A stretch of DNA of 37,233 nucleotides from Octopus bimaculoides (Eukaryota), in NCBI RefSeq assembly GCF_001194135.2, contig NC_068994.1:3625964-3663196 (forward strand), in the 5' to 3' direction. Below, in pieces: positions 14,801-31,577 of this stretch (the first letter of the stretch is position 1; each line of letters starts with the position of its first letter). The position numbers and the translations under genes are program-made. Under the pieces are notes generated by a model. That model ran no database searches. It was given only the letters and a program-made list of their open reading frames with translations, and had not been told where the DNA came from.

Positions 14801-16564
14801 AACCAAATATGCTTGGGCCAAAGATGTTAAAAGGTTAAGTGACCAACAGTGACTTTGGTCAGTGTTATATAGTTTTTTTATTAGTATCCTTCACTGCATG
14901 ATATGTTGCTTTACACTGGCCTCTGCTCATGTAGCCACATGGAGAATTGTATCATCAATATTATCAACAACAAGGTGGTACAGTCAGCACATGACTTTAT
15001 ACTAACTTGTTCCCACCAACACCATCCTGCTACCCATTATGCCACCCCTATTATAACTTTCATTATATCTTGCCCTCTTCTTTTATTTTTATTACATTTT
15101 ACCCTGCTGTCTTTGTATTTAAATCCTGCAAACATTGTTATGTCCCATGTGGACCAGATTTCATATTTTCACACATTTCTTCTGTTTCTTTTTCTTCTTC
15201 TTCTTCTTCTAGGGTAACAGTTTTACTGTGGAGACTTTAACCCTCGACTTGATGTGAAGCTGGTTTTGTTACATTGTTAATAGCAACACACTGATGTATC
15301 TGATAGTCTAATGTAGTGTGTGTGTGTGTGTGTGTGTGCCACCATAAACAGACTGTATAACAGCTACTACTTTACAACAACCTGCAACAATCTTCTCCCT
15401 AAACATTGTCATATTGGATTACTAAATTTGTGTTCCTGCTGTTAAATAGCTCTGGTGGCCAACCGGTCATTGGTCAACCGTACTGTGACTGGATAGTATT
15501 GACAACTTAGCTCTGACTGAAGTATATTGGTCAACAGGGTTGTGACCAATGTACTTCAGCCATTGGAATACTGACTGGTGAGAGAAAAAAAAAACAAACC
15601 CTTGGTCAACATAGGCACTGACCAAAGTTAATTAATTAATCAGTGTAACCTGGTGATTGGACCTTCGACATAATTGATTATTTTAATTCAGTATTAAACT
15701 GGTAATGTGAACAGTGGCACAGTGAAGATAAAAATATCATTATAAAGAGTGGCAGACTCAATGAATATGATTAGCAGCAGAATCAACATAAACAGTGGCA
15801 GAACCAACATGATCAGGGACATTATCAACAGTGGCAGAATCGTAATAAAAAGTGACAATACAGGCTGTGAGAGAATGAACATATAACAGTGGCAGAAGTA
15901 ATAAACAGCAGTGGTAGATAATAATAATAATATTGATATTAAGAAGAACAGTAATGACTGAAGTATAAAGTATCATTTGATGGTGAGAGACAGACGATAA
16001 TAAATGATACGTGATTTTGAAAAATAACCGCAGGCCCTACCAAATATTGTTTGCTAGTGGCTTCTGTAAATTGGTTGTGTAGGGTTACAGAAGGCAGAGA
16101 AACTGGTATAAACAGTGACCGACAGTTAACACTTTACAATGTGCACTGCAACCACAACAAGTAGGTAGCAAGTTGTTAAAAGGAACCCCAACAGTTAACA
16201 AACTGTACAACAGTAAACAGTAGAACAACAGTGAACAGCAGAACAACAGTGAACAAGCTGTAAAGTTACAACAACAGCAATTGCAATCAAACAGAAAAAT
16301 ATCTAAATGACAAATAAACCATTTACACCAACAGCAACTACAACAACAACTTGGCCATTTACAACAACAGCAATTGTAATATTTCTTATCTATAATGACT
16401 TTAACAGATCCAACTAATTGTGAAGTTAGAACAAGAAATAAGCACAGCAGCGGCAGTGCAGTAGCTGCTGCTGCTGTTGCAACTTGTAAGCTCCCCCAGC
16501 AACAGTGCAGTTGTATTGATATATTTACACCAAGTTTCTCCTTCCAATCAATCCAACACTAACC

Positions 16565-19500
16565 ATGTATCCAGGTCAGCCCACCTTCCCCACCCTTGAA
16601 AATACCCAGTGTACAATATACGGGCAGCCTATCTACCAGATAAACCAGTTGAAAATACCCGAACGAAGCCCTGTCAATGAAACGGGCTACTTCCCCAATC
16701 TTCTTTGGAAAGACCAATACCAAGGTCTTGGGATCTCTAATAATGTCCAAAACCTCACTCCGAACCGAGTGTCTGTCCCTTCTGTAACCCCATCCCCCAG
16801 CCCCAGCTATAAAAATAGCACCAACACAATCAGATTTGCCAGTTCTGAGAGCAGCAATGTTACTACAGACAGGAATCTGCGTATTCCTGATGTCTCTAGG
16901 AAAAGTGTTTACCAAGGAACTACCGGTTCTGATTCTTCACGAATACACAATGAAGGGGAACCGAAAAACTATCGAGTTCTCAACATACCAGGTAAAAGCT
17001 TTTCTTCCCCAGAGCCAGTCTCGAATAATCGCATGGACACTTCTGCAAAGACACAAAAAGGGGACTTCCCATGTAAATATTGCGGGAAGGTCTTCTCTTG
17101 TGAATTCTTTTTGAAGATTCATACTCGCATTCATTTAGAAGACACATCCTCTCCACCACCGCCACACCCCAATCATACCTCTCCCACCAACATTAGCAAC
17201 AATAACAACAACAGCAACAATCATCTTCATCACAACAATAACAGTCACAACAATGCTATTAATAACAACAGTCATATGAATAATAATAACAACAACAGTC
17301 ACAACAACCACAATAACACCAGCAACCACAACAACAACAATAACAACAATAATAATAATTTTTCTAGTAATCAAATTGGAGGTGGCAAAAGCGACTCCTG
17401 TTTCCAGGCACCATCCCCTGTCAAACCCCTTCATATGAATCCACACTTTAACACTGGGAACATCAATTCTTCTGGATCTGCTGTTGACAAACCGTTCCGT
17501 TGTAGTATTTGCTCAAAGACATTCAGTCATCTAACTAATCTAAAACTTCATCTTCGCACACATTCTGGTGAGAAACCATTTAGCTGTGATGAATGCGGAA
17601 AATCCTTCGCTCAGAAGAGCAGTCTCAAAGATCATCGGCGTCTTCATACTGGAGATTTGTTCTATTGCAGTTATTGCAAAAAACCATTTGCAAACCGCTT
17701 CTTTCTTCAGAACCATGAACGTAGCCATACAGGAGAAAAGCCTTTTAAATGTGATTTCTGTGGTAAAGCATTCGGCCAACGTACGAATCTTAAAACCCAC
17801 CTCAGGACTCACACGGGTGAGAAACCATTTCAATGTGATCTGTGTGACAAATCTTTTGCGCAGTTGAATTGTCTAAATGACCACAGACGGCTTCACACAG
17901 GAGATACTTATGTGTGTGGTATTTGCAAAAGAGAATTCTCGAACCAATTCTTCTTGAAAAGTCATGAACAAACCCACAAGTCAGGAGAGATTTTCAAATG
18001 TACAATCTGTGGAAAGACCTTTTCCAACAAGTTCTTTTTGAAAAATCATTCCAGGATTCACAGTGGGGAAAAGCCATATGCTTGTGAATTCTGCGATAAG
18101 AAATTCTCGCAAAACGGGAATTTAAAGACACATCTTAGAATTCATACAGGAGAGAAGCCATTTATCTGTGACATTTGTGGTAAGGCATTTGCACAAAGAA
18201 ACTGTCTGAATGATCATAAGAATCTACATACAGGTGAAACATTCAAGTGCGAATTGTGCAGTAAAAGCTTCTCCAACCAGTTTTTCCTAAAAAGCCATGA
18301 ACAGATACATACTGGCGAGACTTTTAACTGCAATATATGTGGCAAAAACTTTTCAAATAAATTCTTTCTGAAAAACCATTCAAGAATTCATTCAGGTGAG
18401 AAACCATTTAAATGTGATATTTGCGATAAGCAGTTTTCCCAGAGAGGCAATTTGAAAATTCATCTGAGAATACACACAGGGGAGAAACCATTCGTATGTA
18501 ATATTTGCGGAAAAGGATTTGCGCAAAGAAATTGCCTTAACGACCACAAAAGGATCCACACTGGGAACATGTATTACTGCTCCATATGTCATAAAGAGTT
18601 TTCTAATGAATTTTTTCTCAAAAGTCATCAGCAAGTCCATAAGAATACAGATGAAGTTTACACATGCTCAATTTGTGACAAAACATTTAACAACAAGTTC
18701 TTCTTAAAGAACCATGAAATATCCCATTCTGGTGAGAAACCATTTACCTGTGAAATTTGTGACAAGTCCTTCTCTCACCGGACAAACCTAAAAACACATT
18801 TAAGAATACACACAGGGGAGAAACCCTTTCAGTGTGATATCTGTGATAAAGCTTTTACACAGAAAAATACCCTGAACGATCACAAGAGGATCCACACCGG
18901 ACAGCTGTTCTATTGCCCTGTTTGTAATAAAGGGTTTTCTAATCGCTTTTTCCTAAAAAGCCATGAACTCAGTCATTCGGACCAAAAGTCTTACGAATGT
19001 GAATTCTGCCAAAAACGTTTTACACTATCAGGTAACTTAAAAATGCACTTAAAAACACATACTGGAGAAAAAGATTATATCTGCGACATTTGTGGGAAGG
19101 CCTTTGCCCAGAAAAACTGCCTAAACGACCACAAAAGAGTACACACAGGAGACTTGTTTTATTGCAGCTATTGTAAGAGGTCTTTTGCCAACCAGTTTTT
19201 CCTTCGAAATCATGAGCGCACGCACACAGGGGAGAAACCATTCCAGTGCAGTTTTTGTGATAAAGCTTTTGCTCAGCGAGGTAACCTAAAGACGCATCTA
19301 CGCAAACACACAGGTGAGAAACCATTTCATTGTGATATATGTGGGAAGTCCTATTCTCAGAAGAACTGTCTAAATGATCATATGCGTATGCACACAGGAG
19401 AATTGCTCTTGTGCCGCTTTTGTGGCAAAGAATTTTCAAACCGCTTCTTTCACCGTAACCACGAGCGTCTTCACACTGGGGAGATCCCATATCATTGCGA

Positions 19501-20206
19501 GTTGTGTGGGGAAGTGTTCTCCCACAGCTCTGCGCTAAAAGCCCATACCAAAACACACACAGAAATAGGTAAGAAACAAGTATTCTACTGTGACGGTTGT
19601 AATAAATATTTTACAGACCGGAACAACTTTACAAAACACAACTGCTTTCAAACAAACAATTCTGAGTTGTCGAAACATCAGCCTTCCATTAAGTCCCCAA
19701 TGACAAACATCAGAACTAACAACAACAACAACAACAACAACAGCAACAGCATCAACACCAACATCAGCACCACCCCCACTCCACCCCCCTCTAACAACAA
19801 CAACAGTATATACAACAGTAACAACACCACCACCACCACCAACAACAACAACATCAATAGCATTAAAGCAAATCCTACATCTATTCAGGAACCCACTACA
19901 GATATGTCAAAAGGGCCATGTCGAACAGACTCAAACTCTTCGGCTTCTATCAAATCCGACTCCAGCAAAGACTCGTTGACTCCAATAATAGTCCCCTCAC
20001 CTGCTCCCCCCACATTCTTACACGAAATGCCCCCCAGTTGGGAGAACAACTACATTTGGCTGAGAGAGTTTCCTCTGCCCCCCATGTTAAGTTCTGGCTG
20101 GACTAATGTCCCCAACACAATGAATTATGACTGGAACAAAAATAATAAACAAGAAGACGAAGAAAACGCTCAGCAAAGCGCTAATTCTTCACCAAAAAGC
20201 CACTAA
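16565..20206 (+). CDS. Intronless multi-C2H2 zinc-finger protein (1213 aa): 1 isolated finger, Asn/His-rich linker, 25 tandem fingers, 1 degenerate finger, Asn/Thr/Pro-rich tail
   Basis: 3.6-kb uninterrupted ORF. It repeats C-x2-C-x3-F-x5-L-x2-H-x3-H with TGEKP-type linkers. The ATG is in an AACCATG context, with an in-frame TGA upstream at 16517-16519. No KRAB, ZAD, BTB or SET domain was recognised in the N-terminus. Confidence 0.97.
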   Translation: MYPGQPTFPTLENTQCTIYGQPIYQINQLKIPERSPVNETGYFPNLLWKDQYQGLGISNNVQNLTPNRVSVPSVTPSPSPSYKNSTNTIRFASSESSNVTTDRNLRIPDVSRKSVYQGTTGSDSSRIHNEGEPKNYRVLNIPGKSFSSPEPVSNNRMDTSAKTQKGDFPCKYCGKVFSCEFFLKIHTRIHLEDTSSPPPPHPNHTSPTNISNNNNNSNNHLHHNNNSHNNAINNNSHMNNNNNNSHNNHNNTSNHNNNNNNNNNNFSSNQIGGGKSDSCFQAPSPVKPLHMNPHFNTGNINSSGSAVDKPFRCSICSKTFSHLTNLKLHLRTHSGEKPFSCDECGKSFAQKSSLKDHRRLHTGDLFYCSYCKKPFANRFFLQNHERSHTGEKPFKCDFCGKAFGQRTNLKTHLRTHTGEKPFQCDLCDKSFAQLNCLNDHRRLHTGDTYVCGICKREFSNQFFLKSHEQTHKSGEIFKCTICGKTFSNKFFLKNHSRIHSGEKPYACEFCDKKFSQNGNLKTHLRIHTGEKPFICDICGKAFAQRNCLNDHKNLHTGETFKCELCSKSFSNQFFLKSHEQIHTGETFNCNICGKNFSNKFFLKNHSRIHSGEKPFKCDICDKQFSQRGNLKIHLRIHTGEKPFVCNICGKGFAQRNCLNDHKRIHTGNMYYCSICHKEFSNEFFLKSHQQVHKNTDEVYTCSICDKTFNNKFFLKNHEISHSGEKPFTCEICDKSFSHRTNLKTHLRIHTGEKPFQCDICDKAFTQKNTLNDHKRIHTGQLFYCPVCNKGFSNRFFLKSHELSHSDQKSYECEFCQKRFTLSGNLKMHLKTHTGEKDYICDICGKAFAQKNCLNDHKRVHTGDLFYCSYCKRSFANQFFLRNHERTHTGEKPFQCSFCDKAFAQRGNLKTHLRKHTGEKPFHCDICGKSYSQKNCLNDHMRMHTGELLLCRFCGKEFSNRFFHRNHERLHTGEIPYHCELCGEVFSHSSALKAHTKTHTEIGKKQVFYCDGCNKYFTDRNNFTKHNCFQTNNSELSKHQPSIKSPMTNIRTNNNNNNNNSNSINTNISTTPTPPPSNNNNSIYNSNNTTTTTNNNNINSIKANPTSIQEPTTDMSKGPCRTDSNSSASIKSDSSKDSLTPIIVPSPAPPTFLHEMPPSWENNYIWLREFPLPPMLSSGWTNVPNTMNYDWNKNNKQEDEENAQQSANSSPKSH
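17066..17134 (+). other. Isolated N-terminal C2H2 finger (FPCKYCGKVFSCEFFLKIHTRIH), Phe-Phe type
   Basis: Canonical C2H2 spacing, separated from the array by about 120 aa of low-complexity sequence. Confidence 0.9.
17198..17359 (+). repeat. Coding (AAC/AAT)n low-complexity tract (poly-Asn with His)
   Basis: Translation NNNNNSNNHLHHNNNSH...NNNNNNNNNNF. A similar Asn/Thr tract lies at about 19718-19860. Confidence 0.9.
17495..19558 (+). repeat. Tandem array of 25 C2H2 fingers (aa 311-998) built from 7 higher-order modules of 3-4 fingers plus a final finger
   Basis: Manual parsing of the translation. Modules start at 17495, 17744, 18077, 18407, 18743, 18992 and 19241; the last finger starts at 19490. 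Confidence 0.95.
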
Positions 20207-20934
20207 AGACAAAAAAAAAAGTGGAGTTTTTTTTTTGCAATTTTTTTTTTTTCATGTGTGCATGTTTGTACATATATGTATGTATGAGTGTGAGTGTGTG
20301 TGTGTGTATGTGTCCTCCATTTGTTATATTTCATGTGTGGGATCTGCTATTGAAATTAGAAGTCAACTTTTCTGACAATCAGTGTACGAGTTTCACTGTT
20401 AGCTTGCTTTGGTTACTAGACTTTTCTGTTCATTGTGTCCACATCGTTGCTGAACATAAGTGTTCACCAACACATGTGCGTTCAGTTTTAGCCGGGGGTG
20501 TTGAATGCGTGTTCGCTGCTTTAATGAGATTTTTAAAACCCATACGTTCACTGTTTTAACAGGATTGCTGAACGTATGTGTGTTCACTGTTTTAACAGGT
20601 TTGTTGGACATTTGTGTTTACTGTGTCAAACAGCAGCAATATCTTCTACATAACCTCATGTCAAGATATTATAAACTCATTTCATTCACATATAAATATG
20701 TGTGTGTGTGTGTGTGTGTAGAATATATATACATATAGATGTGTATGTGTTTGTGTATGTAATTTATGTACGAATACTTACTCAGATCAACAAATGTTGA
20801 CCATACATACACAAACACCCAAACACACACACACACACACACACACATTCTGATACTGTTGTAAATACTTAAATACATATATATTACATATTTGGGTACT
20901 TCTATATATACATACATATGTGTGTGTGTGTAAA

Positions 20935-31225: not shown

Positions 31226-31314
31226 CAATAGTCTTTGTCTATTTTTGTGTTGGCGTTCGGCAAGCATGGGAGATAACTCAGGATATGTTTGGTTTTTCTT
31301 AGACCTCATCAGCG

Positions 31315-31577
31315 NNNNNNNNNNNNNNNNNNNNNNNNNNNNNNNNNNNNNNNNNNNNNNNNNNNNNNNNNNNNNNNNNNNNNNNNNNNNNNNNNNNNNN
31401 NNNNNNNNNNNNNNNNNNNNNNNNNNNNNNNNNNNNNNNNNNNNNNNNNNNNNNNNNNNNNNNNNNNNNNNNNNNNNNNNNNNNNNNNNNNNNNNNNNNN
31501 NNNNNNNNNNNNNNNNNNNNNNNNNNNNNNNNNNNNNNNNNNNNNNNNNNNNNNNNNNNNNNNNNNNNNNNNNNNNN
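31315..31577. other. Assembly gap (263 N)
   Basis: N run. Confidence 1.

Follow-up and report, generated by a model that had tools for sequence, protein, structure and literature searches.

A 27-finger C2H2 gene of Octopus bimaculoides with a repeating finger cassette, and its octopod family

Gene structure and domain layout

A 37,233-nucleotide stretch of the Octopus bimaculoides genome (contig NC_068994.1, forward-strand positions 3,625,964 to 3,663,196; hereafter the window, with all window positions counted from its first letter) contains a single uninterrupted open reading frame (ORF) on the forward strand at 16565–20206, encoding a poly-C2H2 zinc finger protein of 1213 amino acids plus stop. 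In total, 27 fingers were recognized in this protein, comprising 26 canonical fingers and one terminal variant. Within its central array, three finger types, here termed A, B and C, recur as a cassette in a fixed order, with an optional fourth finger, C'. The gene lies on chromosome CM046614.1 at ~3,642,528–3,646,169, where assembly GCA_001194135.2 holds a gene call with an identical product. In-frame stops directly upstream of the ATG, that gene call and the agreement of the start with the N-terminus (MYPxQP) of a family of related proteins described below identified the frame as a complete, single-exon coding sequence (CDS).

The protein opens with the family motif MYPGQPTFP...IYGQPIYQINQLKIPERSP (16565–16672), which was aligned with the corresponding region of five related proteins (P0251, P0337, P0228, P0253 and P0252). 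An isolated first finger follows, FPCKYCGKVFSCEFFLKIHTRIH (17066–17134, amino acids 168–190), canonical and C-like with the helix CEFFLKI and thus carrying the Phe-Phe (FF) pair, which stands 122 residues before the array. Between this finger and the array lies a low-complexity spacer rich in Asn and His and encoded by AAC/AAT repeats (17234–17352), as seen in both the Tandem Repeats Finder rows and the translation. The array itself consists of 25 contiguous fingers (amino acids 311–998, 17495–19558). Downstream of it, comparison with P0251 and P0228 revealed the terminal variant finger FYCDGCNKYFTDRNNFTKHNC (19583–19645, amino acids 1007–1027), in which the second His is replaced. A second poly-Asn tract encoded by an AAC repeat (19718–19774; Tandem Repeats Finder and translation) and the C-terminal family motif FLHEMPPSWENNYIWLREFPLPPMLSSGWTNVP (20015–20113) complete the protein, the latter motif being supported by alignments and by paralog tblastn matches to window positions 19976–20113. 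All of these elements are encoded on the forward strand.

The AAC/AAT-encoded poly-Asn tracts therefore lie on both sides of the array. Similar tracts are present in the O. bimaculoides paralog P0253 and are missing from its distant relative P0252. This distribution suggests that coding microsatellite expansion may be a trait of this lineage.

Finger types, order and links

Parsing with a regular expression for the canonical CX2CX12HX3H finger recovered all 26 canonical fingers with intact zinc ligands, and placed the 25 fingers of the array in the exact order ABC, ABCC', ABCC', ABCC', ABC, ABC, ABC, A. The seven cassettes occupy 17495–17743 (fingers 2–4, A B C), 17744–18076 (fingers 5–8, A B C C'), 18077–18406 (fingers 9–12, A B C C'), 18407–18742 (fingers 13–16, A B C C'), 18743–18991 (fingers 17–19, A B C, with the irregular link SDQKS after them), 18992–19240 (fingers 20–22, A B C, with a hybrid-looking finger 20) and 19241–19489 (fingers 23–25, A B C, with a degenerate finger 25), after which finger 26 (19490–19558) is A-like. 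The seven A helices read HLTNLKL, QRTNLKT, QNGNLKT, QRGNLKI, HRTNLKT, LSGNLKM and QRGNLKT, with HSSALKA in the A-like last finger. B helices match QxNCLND exactly in five of seven cases, the others being QKSSLKD and QKNTLND, and the C and C' fingers contribute ten NxFFLx(S/N) helices, one of them deviating (NRFFHRN). With the isolated N-terminal finger included, Phe-Phe occurs on the helix of 11 fingers. The Lys or Arg after the second Cys is kept in every finger, all C copies included.

Links between fingers also follow type. From A to B, seven residues separate His from Cys and the link reads (T/S)GEK(P/D) in all seven cassettes. From B to C the spacing is six residues in seven of seven, one residue short, with the links TGDL, TGDT, TGET, TGNM, TGQL, TGDL and TGEL, then an aromatic residue, while the C-to-C' links are irregular (KSGEI, TGET and KNTDEV). 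An original prediction, made from the letters of the window, had described the number and order of fingers in the array, the three helix types and the type-specific links within the cassette, and all of these were reproduced by our parse. It had not covered the links by which C or C' leads to the A finger that follows, nor the upstream isolated FF finger, the terminal variant finger or the N- and C-terminal motifs. Five of the seven C/C'-to-A links are canonical (TGEKP, SGEKP in three cases, and TGEKP), one is near-canonical (TGEIP) and one is the exception, SDQKS. The seven-residue link of TGEKP(F/Y)x type is therefore confined to the A-to-B and C/C'-to-A steps and is absent at B-to-C and C-to-C'. 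Since the C/C'-to-A links are mostly canonical, the canonically linked block of the array is (C/C')-A-B and not A-B. Non-canonical links stand on both sides of the C fingers F7, F11, F15 and F19 (cassettes 2–5), whilst F4, F22, F25 and every C' finger are followed by (T/S)GE(K/I)P.

The C fingers fall into two sub-types along the same division. In the first (F4, F22 and F25), ..NHERxH is followed by TGEKP or TGEIP and leads straight into an A finger, and in the second (F7, F11, F15 and F19), ..KSH(E/Q)xxH is followed by an irregular link into C' or F20. These two sub-types suggest that the three-finger and four-finger cassettes were duplicated separately.

Two further fingers depart from their type. 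Finger 20, YECEFCQKRFTLSGNLKMH (18992–19060, amino acids 810–832), comes after the sole irregular C-to-A link, SDQKS; its first half is nearest to the fourth-slot finger of the paralog P0250 (..SFTLQINLKNH) and its helix is nearest to A, and when fingers were clustered its nearest neighbour was P0250 finger 6. An in-register unequal crossover, joining a fourth-slot finger to an A finger, would appear to have left this hybrid as its scar. In finger 25 (19406–19474), His takes the place of the core Leu (NRFFHRNH) and the short link has no aromatic residue (TGELLL), so that the final cassette appears, from its residues, to be decaying.

Membership of the Krueppel-type tandem C2H2 class was clear (Pfam zf-C2H2 375 bits, zf-H2C2_2 534 bits). 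Scanning the whole protein against Pfam returned zinc finger models only, with no KRAB, SCAN, BTB/POZ or ZAD domain. Weak overlaps of zf-C2H2_jaz and zf-met with C and A fingers were generic and fell on canonical fingers. The view that no described family has such an arrangement of types and links held up, as there was no curated match and Pfam gave generic C2H2 only.

To place these features in context, we used 327 unrelated poly-zinc-finger proteins gathered in our searches, with 7,545 fingers and 5,940 links, as background. Of the background links, 94% have seven residues and 2.6% have six, and Phe-Phe at helix positions +2/+3 was found in 1 of the 7,545 fingers; the Phe-Phe pair and the periodic short link are the unusual features of the octopus array. 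Its contact residues are also highly repetitive, with 13 distinct tuples (positions -1, 2, 3 and 6) among the 26 fingers (ratio 0.50), compared with a median ratio of 0.89 in 198 arrays of 20–35 fingers, only 4 of which had a value as low or lower. Amino acid identity over the 23 core residues averages 57–67% within a type and 40–44% between types, and the fingers group by type rather than by position. The A-B-C pattern is more than chance; it arose by duplication, so its repeats do not count as independent events.

An octopod gene family and its genomic setting

A full-length protein search was flooded by giant generic poly-zinc-finger proteins, since every additional finger raises the score. 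A profile of the 83-residue A-B-C unit, proposed earlier as a way to find relatives and here searched exhaustively, was swamped by the same giants, but a motif scan of its matches did yield one true relative, P0228. The search that worked used a query in which scaffold residues were masked by X and only the 12 helix residues per finger and the terminal motifs were kept. When this query was checked locally beforehand, a known relative ranked above almost all giant poly-zinc-finger proteins. Run against the protein collection, it returned P0251 (226 bits), P0228 (191 bits), P0252 (143 bits) and P0253 (133 bits), with generic proteins from 81 bits down.

Three paralog types were distinguished, all annotated by generic zinc finger names only. 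The first, named zinc finger protein 2 homolog or ZFP2, has 687–688 residues and occurs in O. vulgaris, O. sinensis and O. bimaculoides (XP_014769006.1, CAI9733335.1). The second, ZNF665-like, has 780 residues and was found in O. vulgaris, O. sinensis and Argonauta hians (XP_029644900.1, CAI9733332.1, GAB1604214.1), the Argonauta protein being 91% identical to that of Octopus. The third, ZNF271-like or ZFP2, has 807 residues and is present in O. bimaculoides, O. sinensis and O. vulgaris (XP_014771536.1, XP_029645462.2, CAI9733406.1). P0252, known from Logan alone, is a more distant relative of the ZNF271-like type, 72% identical overall to the O. bimaculoides protein, with cassettes nearly identical to those of that paralog (proportion of nonsynonymous differences, pN, 0.02–0.05). 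Complete family genes with an uninterrupted CDS were observed on short Logan contigs (SRR29271456 and SRR11869390). The divergence of P0252 hints at an origin in a more distant cephalopod, in which case the family would extend beyond Octopus and Argonauta.

The 27-finger gene (3.64 Mb) shares its O. bimaculoides chromosome with two paralogs, at ~3.393 and ~4.986 Mb, each of which is a single coding exon. No other family gene was detected by tblastn in the window or in the P0250 flanks, the P0253 flank having been left out of this search. P0250 and P0253 were ruled out as orthologs of the 27-finger gene, their own genes being located elsewhere on this chromosome, and P0251 was ruled out because it falls in a separate cluster that has Octopus and Argonauta proteins of its own.

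All members share a common layout. The N-terminal motif MYPxQP..Y(G/D)QPxYxxNxLK is common to the family, the 27-finger protein included, and every member has the isolated first finger followed by a spacer. A-B-C cassettes with 7-7-6 His-to-Cys spacing and an optional fourth finger were present in all five proteins compared, and the terminal variant finger in all members, with the paralog counterpart ending in ..LNNHKC. The C-terminal motif of the family reads PYLHxMPQSWENNYLWSRGFPMPP..SxWPNVP, and the 27-finger protein fits the family pattern (Y/F)LHxMPxSWExNYxWxRxFPxPP..SxW. Beyond it, the distal tail of the paralogs (..C-GVKQxKQxPWxxxQxxH) is replaced by NYDWNKNNKQEDEENAQQ. When the fingers of all members were clustered, A grouped with A, B with B and C with C; this clustering by type across paralogs implies that the cassette is older than the paralogs.

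The paralogs differ from one another chiefly at helix positions +2/+3. In the B slot, the Asn-Cys of the 27-finger protein corresponds to Asn-Ser or Asn-Asn in P0251, while P0250 and P0253 have Ile-Asn. Phe-Phe occupies the C slot of three paralogs; P0253 has Ile-Asn (LQINLRN, QQINLRN) or Ile-Ser there, and the fourth slot has Phe-Phe in the 27-finger protein and P0251 and Ile-Asn (QKINLKN) in P0250. The 27-finger gene thus stands apart through Asn-Cys in B and FF in both the C and fourth slots, as well as through its seven cassettes and 27 fingers (compared to about three cassettes and 13–14 fingers in the paralogs), its poly-Asn tracts, its missing distal C-terminal tail and its want of a protein record or ortholog in the databases searched. 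In the protein searches, this small, slowly evolving family has so far been seen only in octopods.

Beyond the 27-finger gene, which is the sole substantial ORF in the window, the sequence is AT-rich and dense in (TA)n and (CA)n microsatellites, with two assembly gaps. These appear as runs of N, one close 3' of the gene at about 20750–20900 and the other at about 31300–31560. No tRNA, SINE, Rfam or structured RNA match was found in the window. An 18-bp tandem repeat of 2.7 copies lies 5' of the CDS (16207–16255) and a 36-bp tandem repeat of 2.3 copies lies 3' of it (20546–20624), neither having an evident relation to the gene. An unsupported antisense ORF of 178 residues runs through the finger array on the minus strand (19020–19556); it probably arises from the codon composition that zinc finger arrays have in general.

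Age of the cassettes and selection

Nucleotide identity between fingers of the same type is 58–66%, and Tandem Repeats Finder detected no tandem repeat in the array. Between the seven cassettes, Nei-Gojobori counts gave a proportion of synonymous differences (pS) of ~0.96, which is saturated, with a pN of 0.23. At sites encoding the same amino acid, codon identity was 44.3%, compared with 45.1% expected from random draws under the codon usage of the array itself. Saturated synonymous sites and codon identity at the random level imply that the cassette duplications are ancient and that recent gene conversion did not take place. Recent tandem duplication or gene conversion was accordingly ruled out as an origin of the array, on DNA identity, the missing tandem repeat, pS and codon identity alike.

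Constraint on the protein was strongest where the fingers would meet their target, with pN between the seven cassettes at 0.20 for helix positions -1 to 6 and 0.36 for the other non-scaffold positions. In the paralogs, cassettes show a pN of 0.02–0.07 with pS again saturated. These values show that purifying selection has held the finger types in place, most strongly in the recognition helices. The array grew by old, in-register tandem duplication of a three- or four-finger cassette within one exon, and slot identity (A, B, C or the optional fourth finger) has since been maintained by selection.

DNA recognition and alternative readings

On balance, we favour as the somewhat more probable reading that the 27-finger protein is a conserved, sequence-specific binder of double-stranded DNA (dsDNA) that reads reiterated elements of ~9 bp. 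The functional reading block would be the canonically linked (C or C')-A-B triple, covering ~9 bp. Recognition rules link Gln at -1 and Asn at +3 to A-rich triplets, and an A-rich site is suggested by the A fingers, with Gln -1 and Asn +3, and by the Gln -1 of the B fingers. The one-residue-short B-to-C link may break the register, or serve as a hinge, where one block gives way to the next. As nearly the same contact residues recur in seven blocks, either the protein would meet several close copies of one short element or alternative blocks would be used at different sites, in the manner of the human proteins compared below. The conserved terminal motifs are probable partner-binding motifs.

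The Phe-Phe fingers, in our view, most likely remain in the major groove but have changed to a hydrophobic specificity, such as one for the methyl groups of thymine. Such an altered base contact is favoured over a role away from DNA because the slot alternates with Ile-Asn in the paralogs, and Asn at +3 in the C and fourth slots of the paralogs is a residue typical of base-reading fingers. Lys or Arg after the second Cys contacts phosphate in C2H2 fingers. Its retention in the C copies, the Asn +3 of the paralogs and the structural model described next argue that the C fingers may be ordinary groove-binding fingers with changed specificity. From 17 cassette sequences, AlphaFold2 modelled A-B-C with a mean local confidence (predicted local distance difference test, pLDDT) of 91.6 and a predicted template modelling score (pTM) of 0.64. 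The model superposes over all three fingers on the DNA-bound structures of Gfi-1 fingers 3–5 (template modelling score, TM, 0.85; root-mean-square deviation 1.6 A), Aart (0.83; 2.3 A) and Zif268 (0.78), a likeness that speaks weakly for ordinary docking of the C finger.

Several observations weigh against DNA reading by the 27-finger protein as just set out. Both models were made without DNA, and AlphaFold2 tends to give the canonical arrangement. A model of six fingers (A-B-C-C'-A-B) was only moderately confident (pLDDT 80, pTM 0.42) and fitted six-finger DNA complexes loosely (TM ~0.6, root-mean-square deviation 6–7 A). Phe-Phe at +2/+3 has nearly no counterpart in the background fingers, structure searches returned generic matches only and no solved structure with an FF finger, and the role that we assign to this pair is a guess. 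Neither full-length nor masked protein searches revealed an ortholog of the gene in any species, its cassettes are more divergent (pN 0.23) than those of the paralog P0250 (0.07), and finger 25 has lost its core Leu.

The alternative that survives best is the one put forward in the original prediction, in which DNA is read by the A-B pairs only, each covering about 6 bp, C and C' with their FF helices serve as structural spacers or interaction surfaces, and the protein is a multivalent reader of a regularly spaced satellite, microsatellite or transposable element (TE) motif. We regard this as possible but rather unlikely. The B-to-C link is non-canonical throughout and the C fingers of cassettes 2–5 are flanked by such links on both sides, features that may, by analogy with TFIIIA, indicate a spacer role for those particular C fingers. 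The rarity of FF in ordinary fingers and a slightly lower pLDDT across B-C-C' in the six-finger model agree with this proposal, as do the nearly identical contact residues of the seven cassettes and the precedent of human ZNF721, an internally duplicated protein that recognizes sequences in alpha satellite (PMC13541613). The argument from TGEKP links, however, leads elsewhere when applied to every step of the array, since five of the seven links from C or C' to A read (T/S)GEKP and a sixth reads TGEIP, which makes (C/C')-A-B, the classical three-finger unit, the canonical block and puts the short link between blocks. The retained Lys/Arg in the C fingers, the Asn at +3 in the same slots of the paralogs and the canonical DNA-bound path of the A-B-C model also speak against spacers. 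As for the target, the near-identical recognition helices make a reiterated element reasonable, but an arms race with a satellite or TE fits poorly, because the helices are conserved while the synonymous sites are saturated.

A role away from dsDNA was also considered, whereby the FF fingers, and perhaps the whole array, would bind protein or RNA and form a multivalent scaffold or an oligomerization surface. With two exposed Phe on the helix face of 11 fingers, the isolated N-terminal one among them, such a surface is conceivable, and single C2H2 fingers can dimerize through hydrophobic surfaces (PMC12774644). The dimerizing CGx-Phi type is, however, restricted to dipterans and requires an extra beta-strand (PMC12774644). 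The weak zf-C2H2_jaz and zf-met overlaps, which might be taken to favour RNA or protein binding, are generic matches on canonical fingers. With canonical TGEKP links and a Gln/Asn contact pattern in A and B that point to DNA, and with FF alternating with Ile-Asn in the paralogs, we consider this role improbable. A bolder form of the DNA-reading proposal seems to us just as improbable. In that form, the cassette would be a fixed "word", an octopod (perhaps coleoid) invention whose Phe-Phe finger reads the methyl groups of thymine or 5-methylcytosine or binds a partner; the short link would space the words, and the seven-cassette member would be a multivalent binder of a conserved tandem repeat, whether centromeric, telomere-adjacent or another structural satellite.

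It is less probable still that the ORF represents an unexpressed or recently silenced copy rather than a working gene. In favour of this are the absence of the exact protein from a collection of 15 billion proteins and the failure to find a close match even though three paralog types are annotated in several species, together with the degenerate finger 25 and the divergence of the C-terminal tail (CGVKQxKQxPW in the paralogs). The frame is nevertheless open over 3.6 kb, with zinc ligands complete in 26 fingers, and the protein retains its N-terminal motif along with most of the C-terminal one. Conservation of the protein in the face of saturated synonymous sites implies long-term selection on the array or on its direct ancestor, and the missing protein record may be explained by the nearby assembly gaps and dense repeats. 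Finally, a fast-evolving TE-repressor array of KRAB-ZNF or PRDM9 type, derived from recent minisatellite-like finger turnover, would suit the large lineage-specific C2H2 expansions of octopus, which have been linked in discussion to repeats (PMC12513265), but it is largely refuted already and very improbable, given the lack of any DNA-level repeat, the saturated synonymous sites, contact helices that are the most conserved of the variable positions, a paralog 91% identical between Octopus and Argonauta, and the absence of a KRAB, SCAN or similar domain.

For cephalopod genomics, this analysis defines a small, slowly evolving C2H2 family of single-exon genes, marked by terminal motifs of its own and distinct from the large, recent and lineage-specific zinc finger expansions, and flags an intact 27-finger member that has no protein record in the collection searched. 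For zinc finger biology, the array offers a natural example of a periodic link one residue short, a rare Phe-Phe finger type and seven near-identical reading blocks, and hence a convenient system for studying the influence of link length and of repeated blocks on DNA recognition. Its weight would grow if recognition by the FF fingers or across the short link proved to be of a separate kind, or if a structural tandem repeat proved to be the target.

Comparison with known systems

Fingers 4 and 6 of TFIIIA and finger 8 of CTCF are spacer fingers flanked by non-canonical links. The octopus array likewise consists of runs of canonically linked fingers broken at non-canonical links, and TFIIIA and CTCF may be the nearest analogues for how it acts, although their structures (1TF6 and 5YEF/5YEL) were recovered among our structure matches as generic hits only. 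Unlike in these proteins, the interruption in the octopus array is periodic, and a canonical link usually connects the finger that follows the short link with its successor. That any octopus finger leaves the major groove, as the TFIIIA spacers do, would be conjecture.

At the level of single fingers and links, to which this comparison is limited, vertebrate ZNF646 and ZNF646-like proteins (Lissotriton helveticus P0210/P0333 and Geotrypetes P0227) contain finger pairs in which HAGSLxN is followed by a six-residue link (xxGxYx) and NxMALKN. The short link recalls the octopus B-to-C junction, and the N-x-hydrophobic-hydrophobic-L-K-N-H helix of the second finger (NLMALKN) resembles that of the octopus C and C' fingers (NKFFLKN). 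These pairs are, in contrast to the octopus array, dispersed with long spacers between them, form no A-B-C cassette and have Met-Ala in place of Phe-Phe.

PRDM9 and the KRAB-ZNF proteins, which were the top sequence and structure matches, share with the octopus protein a long tandem C2H2 array and TGEKP links. Their DNA is minisatellite-like and their contact residues are the most variable, whereas in the octopus gene the repeats have decayed completely at the DNA level and, of the variable positions, those in the contact helices are the best conserved. In O. bimaculoides itself, 1,453 C2H2 sequences have been reported (PMC12513265), a number that bears out the C2H2 expansion noted in the original prediction. 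That study does not mention links or cassettes, and the octopod family, comprising three paralog types and the 27-finger gene, looks unlike the large recent C2H2 clusters of octopus.

The closest precedent for the organization of the array comes from human C2H2 proteins, ~140 of which carry internally duplicated blocks of adjacent fingers according to a GHT-SELEX study (PMC13541613). In ZNF775, fingers 1–3, 5–7 and 9–11 are homologous, with single fingers between them; the arrangement has been conserved since the marsupial split, and the blocks bind related sites. In ZNF721, it is the duplicated blocks that recognize the alpha satellite sequences (PMC13541613). As in these two proteins, the octopus array is made of blocks of adjacent fingers duplicated within one array, but it is set apart by its seven copies, by the link that is shortened once in every cassette and by its FF fingers, and its sequence kinship with them is that of generic fingers only. 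The study counts as duplicated at least two adjacent fingers related to a second block with no more than five edits per finger (PMC13541613). Under that definition the octopus cassettes do not qualify, as only single pairs (F8/F12, F10/F21, F10/F14 and F4/F22), never two adjacent fingers, lie within five edits, although the blocks are clearly homologous. What had been described as a "higher-order code" is an old internal duplication of a finger cassette, common to a small octopod family and produced by a known mechanism, the one that gave rise to the human duplicated sub-arrays, at a much greater age. Given that the principle of block duplication is already established, the octopus array extends known biology rather than overturning it.

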